Shown here piece by piece: positions 3,209 through 48,308 of a DNA stretch of 64,000 bases. Position 1 is the stretch's first letter; each line of letters starts with the position of its first letter. The position numbers and the translations under genes are program-made. This DNA is from Neoechinorhynchus agilis. Its lineage: Eukaryota > Animalia > Acanthocephala. The stretch is taken from assembly GCA_051530055.1 (NCBI GenBank), contig CM121341.1, forward strand, positions 8,100,784 through 8,164,783, given 5' to 3'. Below the pieces are notes generated by a model. It was given only the letters and a program-made list of their open reading frames with translations. It did not search any database and had not been told where the DNA came from.

Positions 3209-3666
3209 TGCGGGTGTTCGGGAATTGATTTAATGAAATAAAAGGACATTTTGTGACGGATTGTTGGTAGAGATTAAAATTGGCACAGCTAAGATATTTT
3301 TAAAGAAAGGTTTCCGGTTGTGTATTGGATAGCGATATTTTGCTGAACGAATAATGTAGTAGATTCGTCCAAAGCGTTCATGAGAACACTATTTTGGATC
3401 CCAAGTCGACCGTAGTTTGTTCAATCCGTATTTGCGATTGGATTAATTTTTAAGACCACATTTTGCAGACTCAGCTATCTTGAATGGAATCACCATGTCC
3501 AAAAAGGCCAGCGTAATATTGAGCTGTGAATTCGCTGTTAAAATAGCAATCGACTGGAATCATCTTAAACTGCTTTCTTTGTGTGCCATTCGCCGTCCTC
3601 GTTTGGGCCAGAAAACATTAGGTCAGTACGACCTCAACTCGAAAACGGGCAAATAAAGATGAAGTA

Positions 3667-5229
3667 ATGGCGAAAAAGGAGATGACAGATTCAAGCGATA
3701 AAGGACGAATCCATTATGAAATGGCAACGTCCAAATCATTAAATATGCTAGTTAAAAAAGTTAAAATTGGATTGGACTCACAGTTTAAGGTTACAAACAA
3801 GATCTTAGTAACCAGTGTCTTTTCTGAGATTCTCAAACAAGAAATGGCCATCTCTCAGATTGGTAAGTCCGGCCTGATAAAGATTCTCCACCAAATGATT
3901 CAAAACAAAGAAAACGGAGAACTTGATTATTTGATTAAAGAAGTAGCAGCAAAAATTAAAGTAGTGCTCGGCATGGAGAAAGGTAAAAAATCCGATGATA
4001 AATCTCATACGATGTCCGGTATCCACTCAAAGTTTGATGTTGAGATTGAAGAGCAGTGTCCGATAGAAACGAAATCTAAATCCAGTTTTGAAGACGAAAT
4101 TTCAAGGAAGAGGCTGTCATCAACCATTCAAGGTGAAGAGAAAACAAAAATTCAGCGGACAGATTCAACACATCTCCGTCAAAGAATCTTGATGACTATG
4201 AACTCTGAGCACAAAATTGTGAATTTTGATTTATTAAGGAGCATCGTTGATGAAATTCTGAAGGGCGAAGTTAGCCTGAGTGAAATTCGTCAATCCGGAT
4301 TGATAGATGTCCTTGGAGAGATGCTCGACAACAAGGATAATGCTCCACTCAAGAAACTCTTAATCCAAGTTGCTATGAAGGTCAAGGAGGCTTTCAATCA
4401 AAAGCGATCTAAAGAAAGACCAGCGACCAAACCCAAATTGAATAAACCAAAAGAAGTAGAACACGAAATATCAAATACTGATTCTAGTGATCGGGGTTCT
4501 AACGCAATTTCGGAAAAGAGAACAGAATCGCCGAAGAGAATCAATAGCGATGAAGAAATAGAAACGGGACTTCACAATGTCGAAAACGTTCACAGTCAAC
4601 AGATTTCAGAATCCAAACAATTGATGCCGCCTTCTCGTTTAACCAAGAAGATTAAATTACTAAAGTTTTTATTGGATTCGCAATACGCAACCAAAAGCCT
4701 AGAACTGGTGGACGATGTCCTTTGCGAGATTTCAGAATTAGAGATGACTGTGGATGAAATCAAAGATTCCGATCTTATAAATATTCTCCATAAGATGGCC
4801 AGCAACGGGGAAAACGAACCGTTAATCGACATAATCGATAAAATCGGAAAAAAGATGGTGGGAATCTATAATCGGCAACCTACGGAAATGTCCAATATTT
4901 CGATCGAAAATAAATCAGGGTCACAATTGAAGGACAAACCACTCAATGAATCGATTTCAAAAAGAAAATCAAAGCCTTCAATTGAAATGAACTTGAGCAT
5001 CAAGGAACTCTGCGATCGTTTAAAAAGCATCTTGGACGAGAAGTTCACAGTTCGGAACCACGCGATGCTAAAGCGGATACTCAGCGCGATGATTGAACGT
5101 GAAATAGCGCTGAGTGAAATTCGGAATAACAATTTGGTCAACATCCTAAGTCAAGTTCGTTCGAATCATTTAAATATTCGGCACAAGGGACTGCTTGAAA
5201 AATTGCTGAAGAAAATAAATGGCGGCTGA
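3667..5229 (+). CDS. 5'-truncated copy of the TFIIS-N-like multi-module protein (4 modules, 520 aa)
   Basis: Open 520-aa ORF nearly identical to the C-terminal part of 21218-23149; lacks module 1 and a 12-nt segment (ARCK). Confidence 0.65.
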   Translation: MAKKEMTDSSDKGRIHYEMATSKSLNMLVKKVKIGLDSQFKVTNKILVTSVFSEILKQEMAISQIGKSGLIKILHQMIQNKENGELDYLIKEVAAKIKVVLGMEKGKKSDDKSHTMSGIHSKFDVEIEEQCPIETKSKSSFEDEISRKRLSSTIQGEEKTKIQRTDSTHLRQRILMTMNSEHKIVNFDLLRSIVDEILKGEVSLSEIRQSGLIDVLGEMLDNKDNAPLKKLLIQVAMKVKEAFNQKRSKERPATKPKLNKPKEVEHEISNTDSSDRGSNAISEKRTESPKRINSDEEIETGLHNVENVHSQQISESKQLMPPSRLTKKIKLLKFLLDSQYATKSLELVDDVLCEISELEMTVDEIKDSDLINILHKMASNGENEPLIDIIDKIGKKMVGIYNRQPTEMSNISIENKSGSQLKDKPLNESISKRKSKPSIEMNLSIKELCDRLKSILDEKFTVRNHAMLKRILSAMIEREIALSEIRNNNLVNILSQVRSNHLNIRHKGLLEKLLKKINGG

Positions 5230-11016: not shown

Positions 11017-12639
11017 GTGAATTCAAATGGAAATTGCTTACGAGAATCGTCTTTATGTTACCAAAACGATGTAAGTAGTCTTTTATCGCGATATCTTCAC
11101 AATGCCGATCGGTTTTATTATAGCCAAAACATTATGGAGCTGTGTAAAAGTCCACACGGCGAATCCCCGAAGTGTACCGAAGAGGATTTATATACCCAAT
11201 CTCGCAATCTCTCTCAGTACTATAAATCAGTGTTGGATTTATTAAATGAAATGGTAAATCAGTCGAGGTATTTATGGGCGAATCGAAGAGCAACTGGACC
11301 AGAAATGAGACATACAACGACCGACTACTATGAACCACACCAACAATTAAGTAACCAAATGCAGCCGAACGCTACACAATCAGACCAATCAATTGGTCAA
11401 TTTAATCAATTTGAACAGCAAGGCCCAATGTTCGAATGCCAACGAAACGAACATGGCATGCAAAACTATCACACAACGAATCAACAGCATTCGATCGACC
11501 AATCAAATCAATATGAAAGTTCGTTCTTTTACAATCAAACCCAACAGATCGGCCAATCCACTCAATTTGAGCCGACATTTCCGCCAAATCAACCTCAAAG
11601 ATCGGACCAAGTCTGGCAATCACCGAGAATACTAAATCCAACGCTCCAAAGTCAGCGATTATATCAAGCAAGACAGCCGAATCGCTATAACCCAATTAGT
11701 CAACAGCATCCGATCCATCAATTGAATCAATATGAAGTGGATTACGCACCTAATCAGTCTCTACCACTCAATCAATCAAATATGTCGATGTACAGTGATC
11801 AGCCGATTGATTTCACCGGTCAACGGCAACAACTCCATCCTGTGGGTGTATTTGACACTCAAAGAAATGTCGAGCAACAAACACAGTTTTTTAATCCCGA
11901 AATTTCCCAACCGCTAAAAGTTGAATCAAACTTTTCCGAATATGGCCGTAATCATCTCCAAGAATCGGCGATAAGATTTACAAATTCAAACGCTGCATTT
12001 AATCAATCTCAAGATCCGGTCTACATGGAACCAACTCTTCAACCAAATAATATTTTGAATGAAGAAGGTAAGATTTTAGGACAAAAAATCCGGTTTAACG
12101 CTCTTATAGAAATTCTGGGAATGAGCAGAGCACAGGCTGAGCAGGAATTGGGTTCTATGATTCCAACGATAAAGATTTTCTTAAGAGAAGTTCGGAAGCA
12201 ACATGCTCATTGTAAGTTTTTATCCGTCGTAAAATATCTTCTCAAGATATTTTTATCAGGTAAAGACCGAAGAATGTTTTACAAATCGATTGTTATCGTA
12301 AAAGAATTTCAACGTGGACGACCGCTGAGAGCCATTACGCTTAAAAAAGCTATTGATTTTGTCGAAAAAACATTGATGCCCATCATGGCATCGGAGTGGA
12401 TTCCATTGCAGTCAACGAGAACGAATCCAACTCAGTTGCAATCGGCATATTCGTCTCTTTTCGGGAATGTGGAGCGCGGAGAAACTGTCGTCGAAATCCT
12501 TAACGGCAATGAAGAAGGAGCAGAGCAGCGGATTGCTGAGAATCCTGAACGTACAAATGAATTGAACGCGACCAATAGAAAGCGTCATCGTGAAGCTTTG
12601 GAGAATGATAAAGAGAAAAACAAAAAGATTAGATTGTAA
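11017..12639 (+). CDS. G1: orphan Q/N/P-rich protein with C-terminal helical region and basic NLS-like tail (first ATG at 11134; the ORF-track start is GTG)
   Basis: 540-codon open frame conserved intact in a second copy (42686-44308 -); ends RKRHREALENDKEKNKKIRL. Confidence 0.7.
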   Translation: MNSNGNCLRESSLCYQNDVSSLLSRYLHNADRFYYSQNIMELCKSPHGESPKCTEEDLYTQSRNLSQYYKSVLDLLNEMVNQSRYLWANRRATGPEMRHTTTDYYEPHQQLSNQMQPNATQSDQSIGQFNQFEQQGPMFECQRNEHGMQNYHTTNQQHSIDQSNQYESSFFYNQTQQIGQSTQFEPTFPPNQPQRSDQVWQSPRILNPTLQSQRLYQARQPNRYNPISQQHPIHQLNQYEVDYAPNQSLPLNQSNMSMYSDQPIDFTGQRQQLHPVGVFDTQRNVEQQTQFFNPEISQPLKVESNFSEYGRNHLQESAIRFTNSNAAFNQSQDPVYMEPTLQPNNILNEEGKILGQKIRFNALIEILGMSRAQAEQELGSMIPTIKIFLREVRKQHAHCKFLSVVKYLLKIFLSGKDRRMFYKSIVIVKEFQRGRPLRAITLKKAIDFVEKTLMPIMASEWIPLQSTRTNPTQLQSAYSSLFGNVERGETVVEILNGNEEGAEQRIAENPERTNELNATNRKRHREALENDKEKNKKIRL

Positions 12640-20556: not shown

Positions 20557-21217
20557 AATTAAACAATAATTCCAATCATTGTCCCCGGTACCTCAATTAT
20601 CAACATTTTGCAAATGACGTGTTCTTTGCCTTTTAAGTTTTAATAAATCTTTTTTTCTTAGAAATTTATTTTGAACATTCATTGAACTTTGACATTTCAA
20701 ACTTATTTGTTTAAGTGCTATCAGCCAAGGCGTTAATAAATTCGGCTTATAGAAATTCACTCAGGCATTTTTTCATTTAGAATATCTTAAAAACATTTTT
20801 GGTCATAGAGTGATTTTTTCTTTGCAATTTGATTTCAGACTCATTAAAAGTTGCCGATGATAACTATGAATCCTGTGAGTTTTGATAGCTTTTATTTTCA
20901 TGCGATATTGTCAAACTCCAAATCACATTCCCCAATGATATTTGCAAACAAATAACTGACAAGCAGCGTCGAAAAAATATACATCATGGATGTGAAAAAT
21001 TATATTTTTAAATTATATTTATCGTGTAGAATTCATCAAGAATTTTCGAAATGAAAGGCTTTCCGAAACACAAATTTATTCATTCTCTGAACTATGATAA
21101 TGATTTATTCTTATTCATCATGGGAACGACTAAAAGCTCCTTGAATATCATGAACAATATTTTATCCTTGGTCAATCGTCTCTTAAACATGGGTAAAATC
21201 AGCGATGATTGATAATA

Positions 21218-23149
21218 TCAGCCGCCATTTATTTTCTTCAGCAATTTTTCAAGCAGTCCCTTGTGCCGAATATTTAAATGATTCGAACGAACTTGACTTA
21301 GGATGTTGACCAAATTGTTATTCCGAATTTCACTCAGCGCTATTTCACGTTCAATCATCGCGCTGAGTATCCGCTTTAGCATCGCGTGGTTCCGAACTGT
21401 GAACTTCTCGTCCAAGATGCTTTTTAAACGATCGCAGAGTTCCTTGATGCTCAAGTTCATTTCAATTGAAGGCTTTGATTTTCTTTTTGAAATCGATTCA
21501 TTGAGTGGTTTGTCCTTCAATTGTGACCCTGATTTATTTTCGATCGAAATATTGGACATTTCCGTAGGTTGCCGATTATAGATTCCCACCATCTTTTTTC
21601 CGATTTTATCGATAATGTCGATTAGCGGTTCGTTTTCCCCGTTGCTGGCCATCTTATGGAGAATATTTATAAGATCGGAATCTTTGATTTCATCCACAGT
21701 CATCTCTAATTCTGAAATCTCGCAAAGGACATCGTCCACCAGTTCTAGGCTTTTGGTTGCGTATTGCGAATCCAATAAAAACTTTAGGAATTTAATCTTC
21801 TTGGTTAAACAAGAAGGCGGCATCAATTGTTTGGATTCTGAAATCTGTTGACTGTGAACGTTTTCGACATTGTGAAGTCCCGTTTCTATTTCTTCATCGC
21901 TATTGATTCTCTTCGGCGATTCTGTTCTCTTTTCCGAAATTGCGTTAGAACCCCGATCACTAGAATCAGTATTTGATATTTCGGGTTCTACTTCTTTTGG
22001 TTTATTCAATTTGGGTTTGGTCGCTGGTCTTTCTTTAGATCGCTTTTGATTGAAAGCCTCCTTGACCTTCATAGCAACTTGGATTAAGAGTTTCTTGAGT
22101 GGAGCATTATCCTTGTTGTCGAGCATCTCTCCAAGGACATCTATCAATCCGGATTGACGAATTTCACTCAGGCTAACTTCGCCTTTCAGAATTTCATCAA
22201 CGATGCTCCTTAATAAATCAGAATTCACAATTTTGTGTTCAAAGTTTATAGTCATCAAGATTCTTTGACGGAGATGTGTTGAATCTGTCCGCTGAATTTT
22301 TGTTTTCTCTTCACCTTGAATGGTTGATGACAGCCTCTTCCTTGAAATTTCTTTACATCTCGCGTCTTCAAAACTGGATTTAGATTTCGTTTCTATCGGA
22401 CACTGCTCTTCAATCTCAACATCAAACTTTGAGTGGATACCGGACATCGTATGAGATTTATCATCGGATTTTTTACCTTTCTCCATGCCGAGCACTACTT
22501 TAATTTTTGCTGCTACTTCTTTAATCAAATAATCAAGTTCTCCGTTTTCTTTGTTTTGAATCATTTGGTGGAGAATCTTTATCAGGCCGGATTTACCAAT
22601 CTGAGAGATGGCCATTTCTTGTTTGAGAATCTCAGAAAAGACACTGGTTACTAAGCTCTTGTTTGTAACCTTAAACTGTGGGTCCAATCCAATTTTAACT
22701 TTTTCAACTAGCATATTTAATGATTTGGACGTTGCCATTTCATAACGGGTTCGTCCTTTATCGCTTGAATCTGTCATCTCCTTTTTCGCCATTACTTCAT
22801 CTTTATTTGCCCGTTTTCGAGTTGAGGTCGTACTGACCAATGTATTCGTCGTTTTCATCCTTGGACAATATTTTTCGCCGACAATCTTTTTGAATTTGCT
22901 CTTTAATTTACTTAGGAACCAACTTGTACTTTTGCAATCTTTGTCTACGGCCATTTCGTCTACCATCTCAAGCATCCCAAAGTTTAAGATTTCTTCGGCT
23001 GTAATCGATCGCGTTAACAATTCTCGCAGGTTTCGTTTGGCCAAAGATTGGTTGATTGTACAAGAATCACCGTCGAGATTATCTCTCAATTCATCACATA
23101 TTTGAGCGAGTGATTTATCCTTAGCATTTGATGTTCGCTTGATCGCCAT
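21218..23149 (-). CDS. 643-aa protein with five ~78-aa helical modules resembling the TFIIS N-terminal (TND/LW) domain
   Basis: Intact intronless ORF from ATG 23149 (MAIKRTS); five repeats of L..IL.EIL..EI.LSEI..SGLI.IL.EM..N..N..L..L...I..K separated by charged linkers. Confidence 0.75.
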   Translation of the reverse strand: MAIKRTSNAKDKSLAQICDELRDNLDGDSCTINQSLAKRNLRELLTRSITAEEILNFGMLEMVDEMAVDKDCKSTSWFLSKLKSKFKKIVGEKYCPRMKTTNTLVSTTSTRKRANKDEVMAKKEMTDSSDKGRTRYEMATSKSLNMLVEKVKIGLDPQFKVTNKSLVTSVFSEILKQEMAISQIGKSGLIKILHQMIQNKENGELDYLIKEVAAKIKVVLGMEKGKKSDDKSHTMSGIHSKFDVEIEEQCPIETKSKSSFEDARCKEISRKRLSSTIQGEEKTKIQRTDSTHLRQRILMTINFEHKIVNSDLLRSIVDEILKGEVSLSEIRQSGLIDVLGEMLDNKDNAPLKKLLIQVAMKVKEAFNQKRSKERPATKPKLNKPKEVEPEISNTDSSDRGSNAISEKRTESPKRINSDEEIETGLHNVENVHSQQISESKQLMPPSCLTKKIKFLKFLLDSQYATKSLELVDDVLCEISELEMTVDEIKDSDLINILHKMASNGENEPLIDIIDKIGKKMVGIYNRQPTEMSNISIENKSGSQLKDKPLNESISKRKSKPSIEMNLSIKELCDRLKSILDEKFTVRNHAMLKRILSAMIEREIALSEIRNNNLVNILSQVRSNHLNIRHKGLLEKLLKKINGG

Positions 23150-23745: not shown

Positions 23746-24444
23746 TTTGATGTCTCAAAAAAATGAGTATGTTTAACAAAATGTTATCGATACGGAAATC
23801 GCTTCTCAATTAACAATTAAATGTTGTCTATGGACTAATTTTAACATTTTTTCGCTAAGCAAAAAAGGATAAAAATGTCAAAAAATCAGCATTAATACAA
23901 AGTAGCCTTTATCCTGCGAATCAGAAATGCTTTAATGATTTCAATGTAAGTTTTCATTCTTTTACTATTGAGAGACATCTTCACCAAACTCAGCCATCTT
24001 TATTTTCACGATCTCAACATTTCCTCTTACTGATTCGAATCTTCAAATCCAAGTATTTAAGCACAATGGAAAACGTACCGCCATAATCGTTCAATGGTCA
24101 AATGAACCACAATCCTGAAGTGGACTCGTACTCATCGATTCGATGAAAAGCCACGTTCAATACAACGTTCAATCATTTCATCTTCAACCGAATCAGCAGT
24201 CATTTCTACTCGAGAACAGAATCAAGCGATGAACCTTGCAAAACCACGAGAAAAACATTCGGACTACGCATGATCAGCACCAAGCAATACAACATACAGC
24301 GAAGTCGCCGATGAACTTGTTGGAATCTACTTCGATCATGAAAATCAGGGGATTTTCCATGGTGTGGTTTTGAGAATAGCTGAAAAGGTGGCAGATTATA
24401 AGAATATAAGAAGATACGTCTATGATGCCATAAATGTTTAAATG

Positions 24445-25429
24445 GCACTCAATGTAATCACAAAACAGCGAAAGGAAATTCATTCGTTAGATTTATATCA
24501 AATGCCGGAACATAAATGTCCTTTACTAATGGAGGATTTGAGTTGTATAAGAACGAGAATTGGGGCGAAAAGTAAAAGAATTGAAGAAAATGATCACAAC
24601 GCTTTGAATGATAGAGCTTCAAAAAATAAAATATTGAAAGCTTTAACGTTACTATTTTCAAAAATATAAGTAGAATAGAAATTTTTAAATTAATTTGATG
24701 GCCGATGAGCGACGCGATTTCAATTAATGCAGATGGAAAGTTTGAGAATTATTATTCACTGTCAAATAAAACAATTCCCTGTCCTAACGGCTACATCCAC
24801 CCGCTTCCCGACGACAGATCGCTGGTATTCACTTTTGATCTATATTGCGATCGGAAATTCTTAAAGGATATTCCACAGCCAGCCTTTTTCATAGGATCAG
24901 TAATTGGGGCAGCCGTTTTGTCAATGTTTGGCGACAACTTTGGTAAGAATCCAATTGCTCTTCTCGGGACTTGGATCAATATCATATTCGGAATCGGCTG
25001 TGCACTTTCAAACACCATCTAAATCGGATGCATCCGTTCAGTTAAAATCATTATATCTTGTTTATTGATCGGAATCATCTTGATATTTTTTATAGTATTC
25101 CGTTTTTTTATTTGGAATTTGCTGGCAGATTGGTCAACTTTCTTGTTACATTCTCAGGATTGAAGTTTTTGCGGCAGAATACCGAGGCACCCGTGTATAA
25201 TGGCTAATTTCATTTGGGGTGTAGGAATGTTGATGTTGGATTTAGTCGCTTATTTTGTTAGAGGATGGCGGAATCTTTATTTGGCAGTTTATCTTCCAGT
25301 CGCAATCACTGTACTCTATTATTGGATTATGAGAGAAAGTTTATTTTGGCTTGCAGTTCATTAACGACAAGCTGATGTAAATAAAATATAAACCGAAGCA
25401 TACAAAATGAATTCAACCAAACAACAAGA
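24445..25429 (+). pseudogene. Direct duplicate of about 1528-2510, including the 5' half of the SLC22-like pseudogene (24705-25429)
   Basis: Near-identical sequence with the same disabling stop after SNTI. Confidence 0.85.
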
Positions 25430-42685: not shown

Positions 42686-44308
42686 TTACAATCTAATCTT
42701 TTTGTTTTTCTCTTTATCATTCTCCAAAGCTTCACGATGACGCTTTCTATTAGTCGCGTTCAATTCATTTGTACGTTCAGGATTCTCAGCAATCCGCTGC
42801 TCTGCTCCTTCTTCATTGCCGTTAAGGATTTCGACGACGGTTTCTCCGCGCTCCACATTCCCGAAAAGAGACGAATATGCCGATTGCAACTGAGTTGGAT
42901 TCGAACTCGTTGACTGCAATGGAATCCACTCCGATGCCATGATGGGCATCAATGTTTTTTCGACAAAATCAATAGCTTTTTTAAGCGTAATGGCTCTCAG
43001 CGGTCGTCCACGTTGAAATTCTTTTACGATAACAATCGATTTGTAAAACATTCTTCGGTCTTTACCTGATAAAAATATTTTGAGAAGATATTTTACGACG
43101 GATAAAAACTTACAATGAGCATGTTGCTTCCGAACTTCTCTTAAGAAAATCTTTATCGTTGGAATCATAGAACCCAATTCCTGCTCAGCCTGTGCTCTGC
43201 TCATTCCCAGAATTTCTATAAGAGCGTTAAACCGGATTTTTTGTCCTAAAATCTTACCTTCTTCATTCAAAATATTATTTGGTTGAAGAGTTGGTTCCAT
43301 GTAGACCGGATCTTGAGATTGATTAAATGCAGCGTTTGAATTTGTAAATCTTATCGCCGATTCTTGGAGATGATTACGGCCATATTCGGAAAAGTTTGAT
43401 TCAACTTTTAGCGGTTGGGAAATTTCGGGATTAAAAAACTGTGTTTGTTGCTCGACATTTCTTTGAGTGTCAAATACACCCACAGGATGGAGTTGTTGCC
43501 GTTGACCGGTGAAATCAATCGGCTGATCACTGTACATCGACATATTTGATTGATTGAGTGGTCGAGACTGATTAGGTGCGTAATCCACTTCATATTGATT
43601 CAATTGATGGATCGGATGCTGTTGACTAATTGGGTTATAGCGATTCGGCTGTCTTGCTTGATATAATCGCTGACTTTGGAGCGTTGGATTTAGTATTCTC
43701 GGTGATTGCCAGACTTGGTCCGATCTTTGAGGTTGATTTGGCGGAAATGTCGGCTCAAATTGAGTGCATTGGCCGATCTGTTGGGTTTGATTGTAAAAGA
43801 ACGAACTTTCATATTGATTTGATTGGTCGATCGAATGCTGTTGATTCGTTGTGTGATAGTTTTGCATGCCATGTTCGTTTCGTTGGCATTCGAACATTGG
43901 GCCTTGCTGTTCAAATTGATTAAATTGACCAATTGATTGGTCTGATTGTGTAGCGTTCGGCTGCATTTGGTTACTTAATTGTTGGTGTGGTTCATAGTAG
44001 TCGGTCGTTGTATGTCTCATTTCTGGTCCAGTTGCTCTTCGATTCGCCCATAAATACCTCGACTGATTTACCATTTCATTTAATAAATCCAACACTGATT
44101 TATAGTACTGAGAGAGATTGCGAGATTGGGTATATAAATCCTCTTCGGTACACTTCGGGGATTCGCCGTGTGGACTTTTACACAGCTCCATAATATTTTG
44201 GCTATAATAAAACCGATCGGCATTGTGAAGATATCGCGATAAAAGACTACTTACATCGTTTTGGTAACATAAAGACGATTCTCGTAAGCTATTTCCATTT
44301 GAATTCAC
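42686..44308 (-). CDS. G2: second intact copy of orphan Q/N-rich gene G
   Basis: 540 codons open; about 5 aa differences from G1. Confidence 0.7.
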   Translation of the reverse strand: MNSNGNSLRESSLCYQNDVSSLLSRYLHNADRFYYSQNIMELCKSPHGESPKCTEEDLYTQSRNLSQYYKSVLDLLNEMVNQSRYLWANRRATGPEMRHTTTDYYEPHQQLSNQMQPNATQSDQSIGQFNQFEQQGPMFECQRNEHGMQNYHTTNQQHSIDQSNQYESSFFYNQTQQIGQCTQFEPTFPPNQPQRSDQVWQSPRILNPTLQSQRLYQARQPNRYNPISQQHPIHQLNQYEVDYAPNQSRPLNQSNMSMYSDQPIDFTGQRQQLHPVGVFDTQRNVEQQTQFFNPEISQPLKVESNFSEYGRNHLQESAIRFTNSNAAFNQSQDPVYMEPTLQPNNILNEEGKILGQKIRFNALIEILGMSRAQAEQELGSMIPTIKIFLREVRKQHAHCKFLSVVKYLLKIFLSGKDRRMFYKSIVIVKEFQRGRPLRAITLKKAIDFVEKTLMPIMASEWIPLQSTSSNPTQLQSAYSSLFGNVERGETVVEILNGNEEGAEQRIAENPERTNELNATNRKRHREALENDKEKNKKIRL

Positions 44309-47369: not shown

Positions 47370-48308
47370 CCATCCAAATTATTGTTTCGAACATCATTTC
47401 TTGAAATTTCTCTTCAAATCATTGCAATAAAATATTATCGTATTCACTGCATCGTTGGCGACGGCGTATTTTTTATCGATAATACTTTTAGTCCGACAAA
47501 AAAGAGATCTTCGGTACTAAATTCGATTTCATCAGACGGTTTTAAGGGTCTATTTTTCGAAACAGATCCTTCAGAGGTATTTTTAGTCGTTTTAACTCGT
47601 TCTCTAACCTCCGATACTCCGCATGTTAAAAACTCTGTGATCTTCGATCTACTTTTCCTCGTAATCTCGTAAAGAATATTGATTAGCCCGGATACACATC
47701 TCTCATCTTTCAAAAGCATTTGATTCATCGAATTCGTTTCTCGAACCGCGTCCTCTTGCAGTGACATTATCTCCTTTCGTGGATCTTTTGAGCTGAAATT
47801 CCTTTTTAATTTTGATTGTAACTCGATTTTTAAAAGAGCGTTCGCTTTGTTTCCAAACATTTCACTCACAATATTCAAAAATCCTTCTTTGCGTAATTCG
47901 CTCAAGCAAATTTTTCCTCTTAGAATATCTTCAAAATCATTCTTTACCCATCCGTAATTTATGACTTTGGAACCAGATTCATCCTCAACCAGTGACGGAG
48001 AGGAACGAAATATGGTGATCCCTCATTTGGAAGCTACTTTGCTTGCATTAAGATATTAAGACTATTCTTGTAGTCGGCAGTGATTTTCGTCAATATTTTC
48101 TTGAATTTGATCTCCATAGGAAACATTTTATACTTGAGACCTCATCATTGCACGGCCATTGTAAACATTTCGCAATTATCAATATCGTCAACGGTAACCT
48201 ATCGAGCCAATAATTCTCGTAGATTTCGTTTCGGAAACGAGTTTGTTTGAATGTTTGTGGGTAATTTTGTTTTTGAATTTGAAATAATTTTTTAATTTCA
48301 ATACTCAT
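47370..48308 (-). pseudogene. Diverged multi-module (TND-like) paralog, disrupted
   Basis: KRNLRELLAR*VTVDDIDNCEM matches module 1; DILRGKICLSELRKEGFLNIVSEMFGNK matches the module consensus. Confidence 0.65.

Follow-up and report, generated by a model that had tools for sequence, protein, structure and literature searches.

Five very probable TFIIS N-terminal domains in tandem in a protein of the acanthocephalan Neoechinorhynchus agilis

A 64,000-nt stretch of contig C1 (8,100,784-8,164,783; hereafter the window) in the Neoechinorhynchus agilis genome (Acanthocephala; 46 Mb) carries, at positions 21218-23149, an intronless gene for a protein of 643 amino acids (aa), in which five modules of approximately 78-80 aa are joined by four linkers. 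The locus raises the question of what these modules are and of what a protein that repeats them five times might do. The findings described below indicate that the modules are very likely homologues from the superfamily of TFIIS N-terminal domains (TNDs; PF08711/PS51319) and that they are MED26-like within it. What the array as a whole may do is a separate matter and is weighed after the identity of its parts.

Sequence and structural affinity of the modules

The five modules were aligned without gaps and their pairwise identity was found to be 18-35%, with hydrophobic residues making up approximately 32-42% of the modules. Each was scored against a leave-one-out profile of the family, from which the tested module and every sequence exceeding 40% identity with it had been removed. 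The scores ranged from 50.5 to 80.6 bits, compared to 15 bits for the highest-scoring of 2000 shuffled versions of that module. When the genome was searched in six frames with the five-module profile, at least 150 module matches were obtained, and a gap-free alignment of 18 modules with less than 70% mutual identity (alignment A2) was built from fetched paralogues. In a search of PDB sequences, the A2 profile matched the human MED26 TND (6zv3_A and 5odd_A) at an E-value of 6e-8, and profile positions 3-72 paired with MED26 residues 9-78 over 70 residues with no gap. The PPP1R10 TND was matched weakly in the same search (E 0.14). The profile also aligned with all four TNDs of a MED26-like protein of the frog Rana temporaria, and the hhalign comparison of A2 with these four domains gave a probability of 87% (E 4e-6, 77 columns), compared to 0.9% or less for 20 column-shuffled versions of A2. 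In a feature search of the ESM Atlas, which was taken as a lead only, the three best matches shown and the ten best family-bearing matches belonged to PF08711 or its clan (score 0.83).

When module 3 was modelled with AlphaFold2 using A2 as the alignment, five helices were predicted at a predicted local distance difference test score (pLDDT) of 91.3. Foldseek ranked the MED26 TND first for this model (template-modelling score, TM, 0.75 for the query; probability 1.00; approximately 14% identity), and the list below it was dominated by TNDs, namely the LEDGF integrase-binding domain (IBD) and those of Spn1/IWS1, Elongin A, PPP1R10 and TFIIS. VIA-align, which is independent of Foldseek, was run against 48,161 representative PDB chains and also placed the MED26 TND first, with a Z score of 9.4 over 80 of 80 residues and a root mean square deviation of 2.8, followed by the next chain at 8.1. 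In the full-length AlphaFold2 model the five modules formed separate five-helix bundles with a pLDDT of 70-90, connected by linkers below 50, and the predicted TM score (pTM) was 0.24; the helices of module 1, for example, were placed at aa 14-26, 34-46, 51-56, 59-68 and 73-90. With this model Foldseek returned the TNDs of PPP1R10, MED26, LEDGF, ELOA and TFIIS at probabilities of 0.98-1.00. Because linkers of 40-78 aa have a pLDDT below 50 and the pTM is 0.24, no packing between modules is predicted, and the modelled architecture is that of beads on a string and not of a continuous ARM/HEAT superhelix.

Several results weigh against the assignment of the modules to the TND superfamily. Pfam family PF08711 matched neither the whole protein nor any single module, even at E-values up to 10, and in a six-frame search of the genome it found the worm TFIIS alone and no array modules. 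The TND of the worm TFIIS scored 18.4 bits on PF08711, under the cut-off of 20.6 bits, and the 52-position model is thus insensitive in this lineage, since the worm's own TFIIS falls under its cut-off. Phmmer searches of the PDB with each of the five modules on its own gave nothing significant; the best single-sequence match of module 4 was the PPP1R10 TND at E 0.07, and the search with module 5 listed the MED26 TND at E 0.26. The A2 profile gave a myosin light chain at E 7e-4 in the PDB search, so that its E-values near 1e-3 are unreliable. Finally, ARM/HEAT fragments reached Z scores of 7-8 in VIA-align, one to two units under the MED26 TND, and the TND itself has been described as like a pair of HEAT repeats (PMC9987994). 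The fold alone is therefore not decisive, and it is the sequence evidence that decides in favour of the TND. A few other candidates were rejected. The matches of the protein or its modules to DUF3689, Phage_hub_GP28 and BDHCT_assoc in Pfam were sub-threshold chance matches, and for the 'CAP REPEAT' match of module 1 in the phmmer search of the PDB no stretch passed on its own.

These findings bear on an earlier note on this DNA, which had described five tandem TND-like modules at this position. The repeat structure was borne out by the intact coding sequence, by the gap-free alignment and by the leave-one-out scores, and the peptide quoted in the note as an example proved to be module 3. Its TND-like reading likewise stood, on the A2 match to MED26, the hhalign result and the top structural match; the check by AlphaFold and Foldseek that it had proposed gave a five-helix bundle with the MED26 TND first. 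The Pfam check that it had proposed for each module came out the other way, as described above. The note had also named the outcome that would speak against it, an unrelated helical fold with no TND match, and when this was checked the result favoured the TND.

Possible function and competing explanations

TNDs, for which no catalysis is known, read short TND-interacting motifs (TIMs) in disordered regions (PMC9987994), and the TND of MED26 docks the super elongation complex (SEC) and TFIID (PMC9987994; PMC6393861). By analogy, we lean, with confidence a little above even for the mechanism as a whole, towards the array protein acting as a nuclear multivalent docking scaffold or decoy. Like the characterised TNDs, each bundle would dock a short motif within a disordered part of some other nuclear protein. 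The candidate partners are factors of RNA polymerase II (Pol II) initiation and elongation, for example SEC/EAF, TFIID, SPT6, IWS1 and LEO1. With five non-identical sites on flexible tethers, one molecule could hold several partners simultaneously, or multiple motifs within a single multi-motif partner, and so form a multivalent hub. In place of a hub, the protein may be a competitor that keeps Pol II factors off Mediator, a role that is proposed because the array protein cannot anchor to Mediator. Pfam searches with this protein and five paralogues gave no match to either Med26_M (PF15694) or Med26_C (PF15693), and the protein ends with module 5. A six-frame search of the genome with PF15693 also gave no match, a weak test in which the controls likewise gave nothing. 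Judged from its domain content, the array protein is not an orthologue of the Mediator subunit MED26, because it is without the middle and C-terminal domains of MED26.

The four linkers, with lengths of 50, 66, 78 and 40 aa, range from neutral to basic and contain 21-28% Ser/Thr. Compared to the four-module paralogue P0004, which is 37% identical to this protein overall, only short islands were kept in them: STRKR in linker 1, and KRSK and (S/T)DEE in linker 3. The two basic clusters may act as nuclear localisation signals and (S/T)DEE as a CK2-type site. FxGF-type motifs were sought in the four linkers as possible self-ligands and none was found. A separate observation concerns the family gene ACOME3_002643 (904 aa; C1, approximately 11314400-11317200, minus strand), which encodes one TND at aa 703-780 after approximately nine near-identical tandem repeats. 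The repeats are approximately 75-85 aa each and abound in acidic Ser/Glu/Asp stretches and KRK clusters. ACOME3_002643 could be a multi-motif partner or a self-ligand for the TND arrays.

Among the alternatives, the one that survives best is that the fold was kept and its use changed. TND-derived bundles would then read another, lineage-specific class of ligand (for example basic peptides, the linkers of one another or proteins associated with nucleic acids) in a role unrelated to Pol II elongation. We regard this as possible but doubtful. The surface of a TND is made of two shallow hydrophobic pockets beside a patch of 3-5 basic residues, which serves as a membership criterion, and in MED26 the mutation of R61/K62 abolishes SEC binding (PMC13634412). 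The equivalents of these two residues are not conserved here: columns 55 and 56 were found to be basic in 25% and 15% of representative modules, respectively, and in modules 1-5 they hold A/V, I/Q, L/D, A/S and R/S. Moreover, the net charge is acidic for modules 1, 3 and 4 and basic for modules 2 and 5, and the linkers are basic, so that a canonical basic patch reading acidic TIMs is only putative. The family also has a polar signature of its own (D14, N21, E31, T38, E41, N57, N60 and the invariant K73) that is atypical of TND descriptions, and a long tree branch leads to the MED26 TNDs. However, L9, D14, N21, T38, L47 and N60 are in common with MED26. The invariant K73 and the mostly basic columns 8, 10, 69 and 75 could still make a basic patch, and the TND review describes no TND with a non-TIM class of ligand (PMC9987994). 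Under the docking reading, too, the ligand specificity probably differs from that of MED26, given that R61/K62 lack conservation and that three of the five modules have a net acidic charge.

An extension of the docking hypothesis is a lineage-specific rewiring of Pol II transcription in this parasite, whose genome is very small, in which a MED26-type reader was freed from Mediator and multiplied five-fold per protein and approximately 30-fold in the genome. The arrays would form hubs gathering or sequestering initiation and elongation factors, and would possibly partly replace the canonical MED26. We consider this unlikely, slightly more so than a changed use of the fold. No canonical MED26 of N. 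agilis was identified with confidence, and the sole candidate is ACOME3_005691, a single-copy gene for 582 aa (C2, approximately 4788500-4790300, plus strand) with one family-type TND near the N-terminus. Its sequence makes ACOME3_005691 a candidate in two respects, as a MED26 orthologue that has diverged strongly and as the ancestor from which the array family arose. The likeness of its 'ILPF..L' to the extreme C-terminus of MED26 is too weak for orthology to be claimed (BLAST E 0.66).

It is improbable that the open frame is a selfish or decaying passenger, carried along by duplications or by a mobile element, with no function for the organism and with many copies reduced to pseudogenes. The setting of the family would fit such a passenger. 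Copies sit in inverted, segmental and palindromic duplications with 92-99% DNA identity and variable breakpoints. The window itself holds a truncated copy and a decayed copy, with retrotransposon remnants nearby at 49-51 kb, and the identifiers of the family genes were not found in the text and one supplement of the N. agilis transcriptome paper, a result that also counts against a docking role. In contrast, the frame of 642-643 codons was found intact at nine loci, which is a lower bound: the window gene, five loci on C3 and a single one on each of C25, C2 and C1 (1.90 Mb). The genome also has truncated copies, as well as more distant paralogues with 1-4 modules (ACOME3_006707, for example, has four modules). 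The synonymous divergence (dS) between intact copies was up to 0.11. The ratio of nonsynonymous to synonymous divergence (dN/dS) spanned 0.15-0.39 for the modules, with most values at 0.2-0.3. For the linkers, most values lay at 0.5-0.85 in pairs whose dS was approximately 0.03 or more, and closer pairs were noisier. The module value was under the linker value in nearly every informative pair, which indicates that purifying selection is centred on the bundles.

The age of the array also speaks against a passenger. In a maximum-likelihood tree, support was strong for the pairing of modules 1 and 3 with their P0004 counterparts by position, and moderate for that of module 4. Because modules are orthologous by position in a paralogue that is only 37% identical, the array architecture is older than the recent amplification. 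No element termini were found in common among the copies, and homology stops at different points in different copies; the differing breakpoints point to segmental duplication, and not to a defined mobile element, as the source of the copies.

Last, an unrelated helical repeat of ARM/HEAT-like or death-fold-like bundles that came to resemble the TND by convergence is very improbable: ARM, HEAT and TOG fragments do come close to MED26 in VIA-align, where by the tool's notes a helical-bundle Z under approximately 13 may reflect a mere common arrangement, and Pfam gave no match, but profiles that are independent of structure reach the MED26 TND with clean shuffled controls, the match covers all 80 residues of the domain from one end to the other within a target of 90 residues, and the bundles are separate on disordered linkers and form no stacked solenoid.

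The gene, its surroundings and the distribution of the family

The features of the gene and of the other family members in the window are listed in Table 1. The composition of the window is eukaryotic, with a GC content of 32-44% and sparse open reading frames (ORFs). The minus-strand frame of the gene is open without interruption from 23251 to 21221. In the NCBI record the gene is annotated as hypothetical protein ACOME3_001938 with 678 aa, of which the 35 extra aa at the N-terminus depend on a six-base first exon ATGTTT (23267-23262) and a 13-nt 'intron' (23261-23249), both on the minus strand. This extension is read as an annotation artefact because the start MAIKR/MTIKR/MPSKR is common to all paralogues, here as MAIKR at ATG 23149. 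An intron of 13 nt is implausible, and ATG 23149 is the likelier start on the sequence comparison. The model of the paralogue ACOME3_000344 bears the same N-terminal extension.

Table 1. Positions of the array gene, its modules and linkers, and the other family members within the window
Feature	Position	Strand	Properties
Single-exon coding sequence, 643 aa + stop	21218-23149	-	ATG at 23149, coding to 21221, stop 21218-21220
Module 1, aa 13-92, TND-like five-helix bundle	22874-23113	-	Net charge -2; isoelectric point (pI) 5.1; leave-one-out 50.5 bits
Linker 1, aa 93-142, predicted disordered, basic, Ser/Thr-rich	22724-22873	-	pLDDT <50 at aa 95-137
Module 2, aa 143-222, TND-like five-helix bundle	22484-22723	-	pI 9.3; leave-one-out 80.6 bits
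Linker 2, aa 223-288, predicted disordered	22286-22483	-	pLDDT <50 at aa 223-290
Module 3, aa 289-368, TND-like five-helix bundle	22046-22285	-	pI 6.1; leave-one-out 67.8 bits; modelled alone
Linker 3, aa 369-446, predicted disordered	21812-22045	-	pLDDT <50 at aa 369-444
Module 4, aa 447-526, TND-like five-helix bundle	21572-21811	-	pI 4.9; leave-one-out 67.3 bits
Linker 4, aa 527-566, predicted disordered	21452-21571	-	pLDDT <50 at aa 527-560
Module 5, aa 567-643, TND-like bundle, C-terminal	21221-21451	-	pI 10.2; leave-one-out 71.2 bits
Two AATAAA hexamers, candidate polyadenylation signals	21104-21109 and 21075-21080	-	110-140 nt past the stop, read from sequence
5'-truncated paralogue, modules 2-5	3622-5229	+	97% aa identity; ORF from ATG 3667, 520 aa
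Decayed, frameshifted family fragment	47397-48022	-	One partial module, E 2e-8; second piece in another frame

When the members of the family were counted with the family profile over the six-frame translation of the window, three were found, one intact, one 5'-truncated and one decayed, and the figure of at least four given in the earlier note is to be lowered accordingly. The truncated copy belongs to an inverted segmental duplication in which 19821-22847 matches 6469-3611 at 96-98% identity, and it is without module 1 because the duplication ends inside the gene at 22847. A segment of 989 bp upstream of the gene (24441-25429) recurs at 1526-2512 in direct orientation with 99.6% identity. 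Since the upstream segment is repeated directly and the gene segment is inverted, the arrangement points to a composite rearrangement and not to a simple inverted duplication. Elsewhere in the genome, two copies lie tail to tail at C2:3054000-3058000 with the inversion point approximately 90 bp past the stop, which corresponds to window position 21130, and this palindrome resembles other palindromes in the window. The window also contains two near-identical ORFs of 540 aa, at 11017-12639 (plus strand) and 42686-44308 (minus strand), which are Gln/Asn-rich and look structured towards the C-terminus. In this region they are amplified along with FoxO-like genes and the TND-array gene. The remnants of retrotransposons near 49-51 kb were mentioned above.

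A profile search of 1.84 billion representative proteins gave 21 matches at E-values of 0.001 or below. The strong matches whose source was traced were all from N. agilis, with a few short ones for which no source was traced, and the coverage of other acanthocephalans in the library is uncertain. The best genuine foreign match was the MED26-like model of Rana temporaria. Pentatricopeptide repeat (PPR) proteins and long repetitive proteins (Haliotis P0009, P0016 and P0019) were rejected as spurious sums of short helical matches, in which Pfam shows PPR or unrelated families and no TND. Word searches with the full protein and with ACOME3_005691 returned only N. agilis proteins. The array family was thus found only in N. 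agilis in the protein libraries searched.

Comparison with known TND proteins

The TND is the fold most enriched among transcription-elongation regulators, and every TND protein described in the review of the family has a single reader, multiplication being seen only in the motifs that are read (PMC9987994). The domain is already known, but that review mentions no protein composed solely of several TNDs, and no paper on tandem or multiple TNDs came up in a full-text literature search. A protein that consists of nothing but five different, flexibly tethered TNDs, and that selection has kept and amplification has made into a family, would be the first multi-reader of the TND-TIM network. Such an array would let the effect of tandem TNDs on Pol II factor assembly or sequestration be tested in a natural setting, and its five diverged TND surfaces could be used for studies of specificity. 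The family also adds to the odd amplified transcription-factor genes in the genome of this worm, among them the FoxO-like amplicons nearby.

The N-terminal domain of MED26 (6ZV3 and 5ODD) is the best match to the worm modules in both sequence profile and structure. The likeness extends to a length of approximately 80 aa, to five helices including the N-terminal one, to the gap-free alignment and to the signature positions in common. In contrast, MED26 has one TND together with the Mediator-anchoring regions Med26_M and Med26_C, and the worm protein has five TNDs and neither region. The Rana temporaria 'MED26-like' protein XP_040210560.1 (942 aa) is the sole protein from outside N. agilis with several profile matches, and it has four PF08711 stretches at approximately aa 19-96, 314-381, 406-481 and 588-653, plus Med26_M and Med26_C. 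This automatic gene model, unlike the worm protein, keeps both Mediator-anchoring regions. Its kinship with the worm family is in the TND itself only, across a long tree branch. The frog model may join tandem MED26 duplicates into one, or it may show a true internal multiplication of the TND in a vertebrate.

TFIIS, Elongin A, IWS1/Spn1, PPP1R10/PNUTS and LEDGF/HRP2 (PF08711, PS51319) have the same five-helix bundle as the worm modules. In these regulators, however, one TND stands beside other functional domains (PMC9987994), whereas the worm protein has five and no other recognisable domain. The canonical TFIIS of the worm is a separate intronless gene (C1, approximately 13399750-13401020, plus strand) for 425 aa, and its product carries a TND at the N-terminus and a zinc ribbon at the C-terminus.

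A parallel to the proposed function is found on the other side of the interaction. IWS1 has three TIMs and a TND, and SPT6, LEO1 and JPO2 have two TIMs each (PMC9987994). In these multi-TIM hubs multivalency assembles higher-order complexes (PMC9987994), as is proposed for the worm array. In contrast to the hubs, which multiply the motif, the worm array would be their mirror image, multiplying the domain that reads it.

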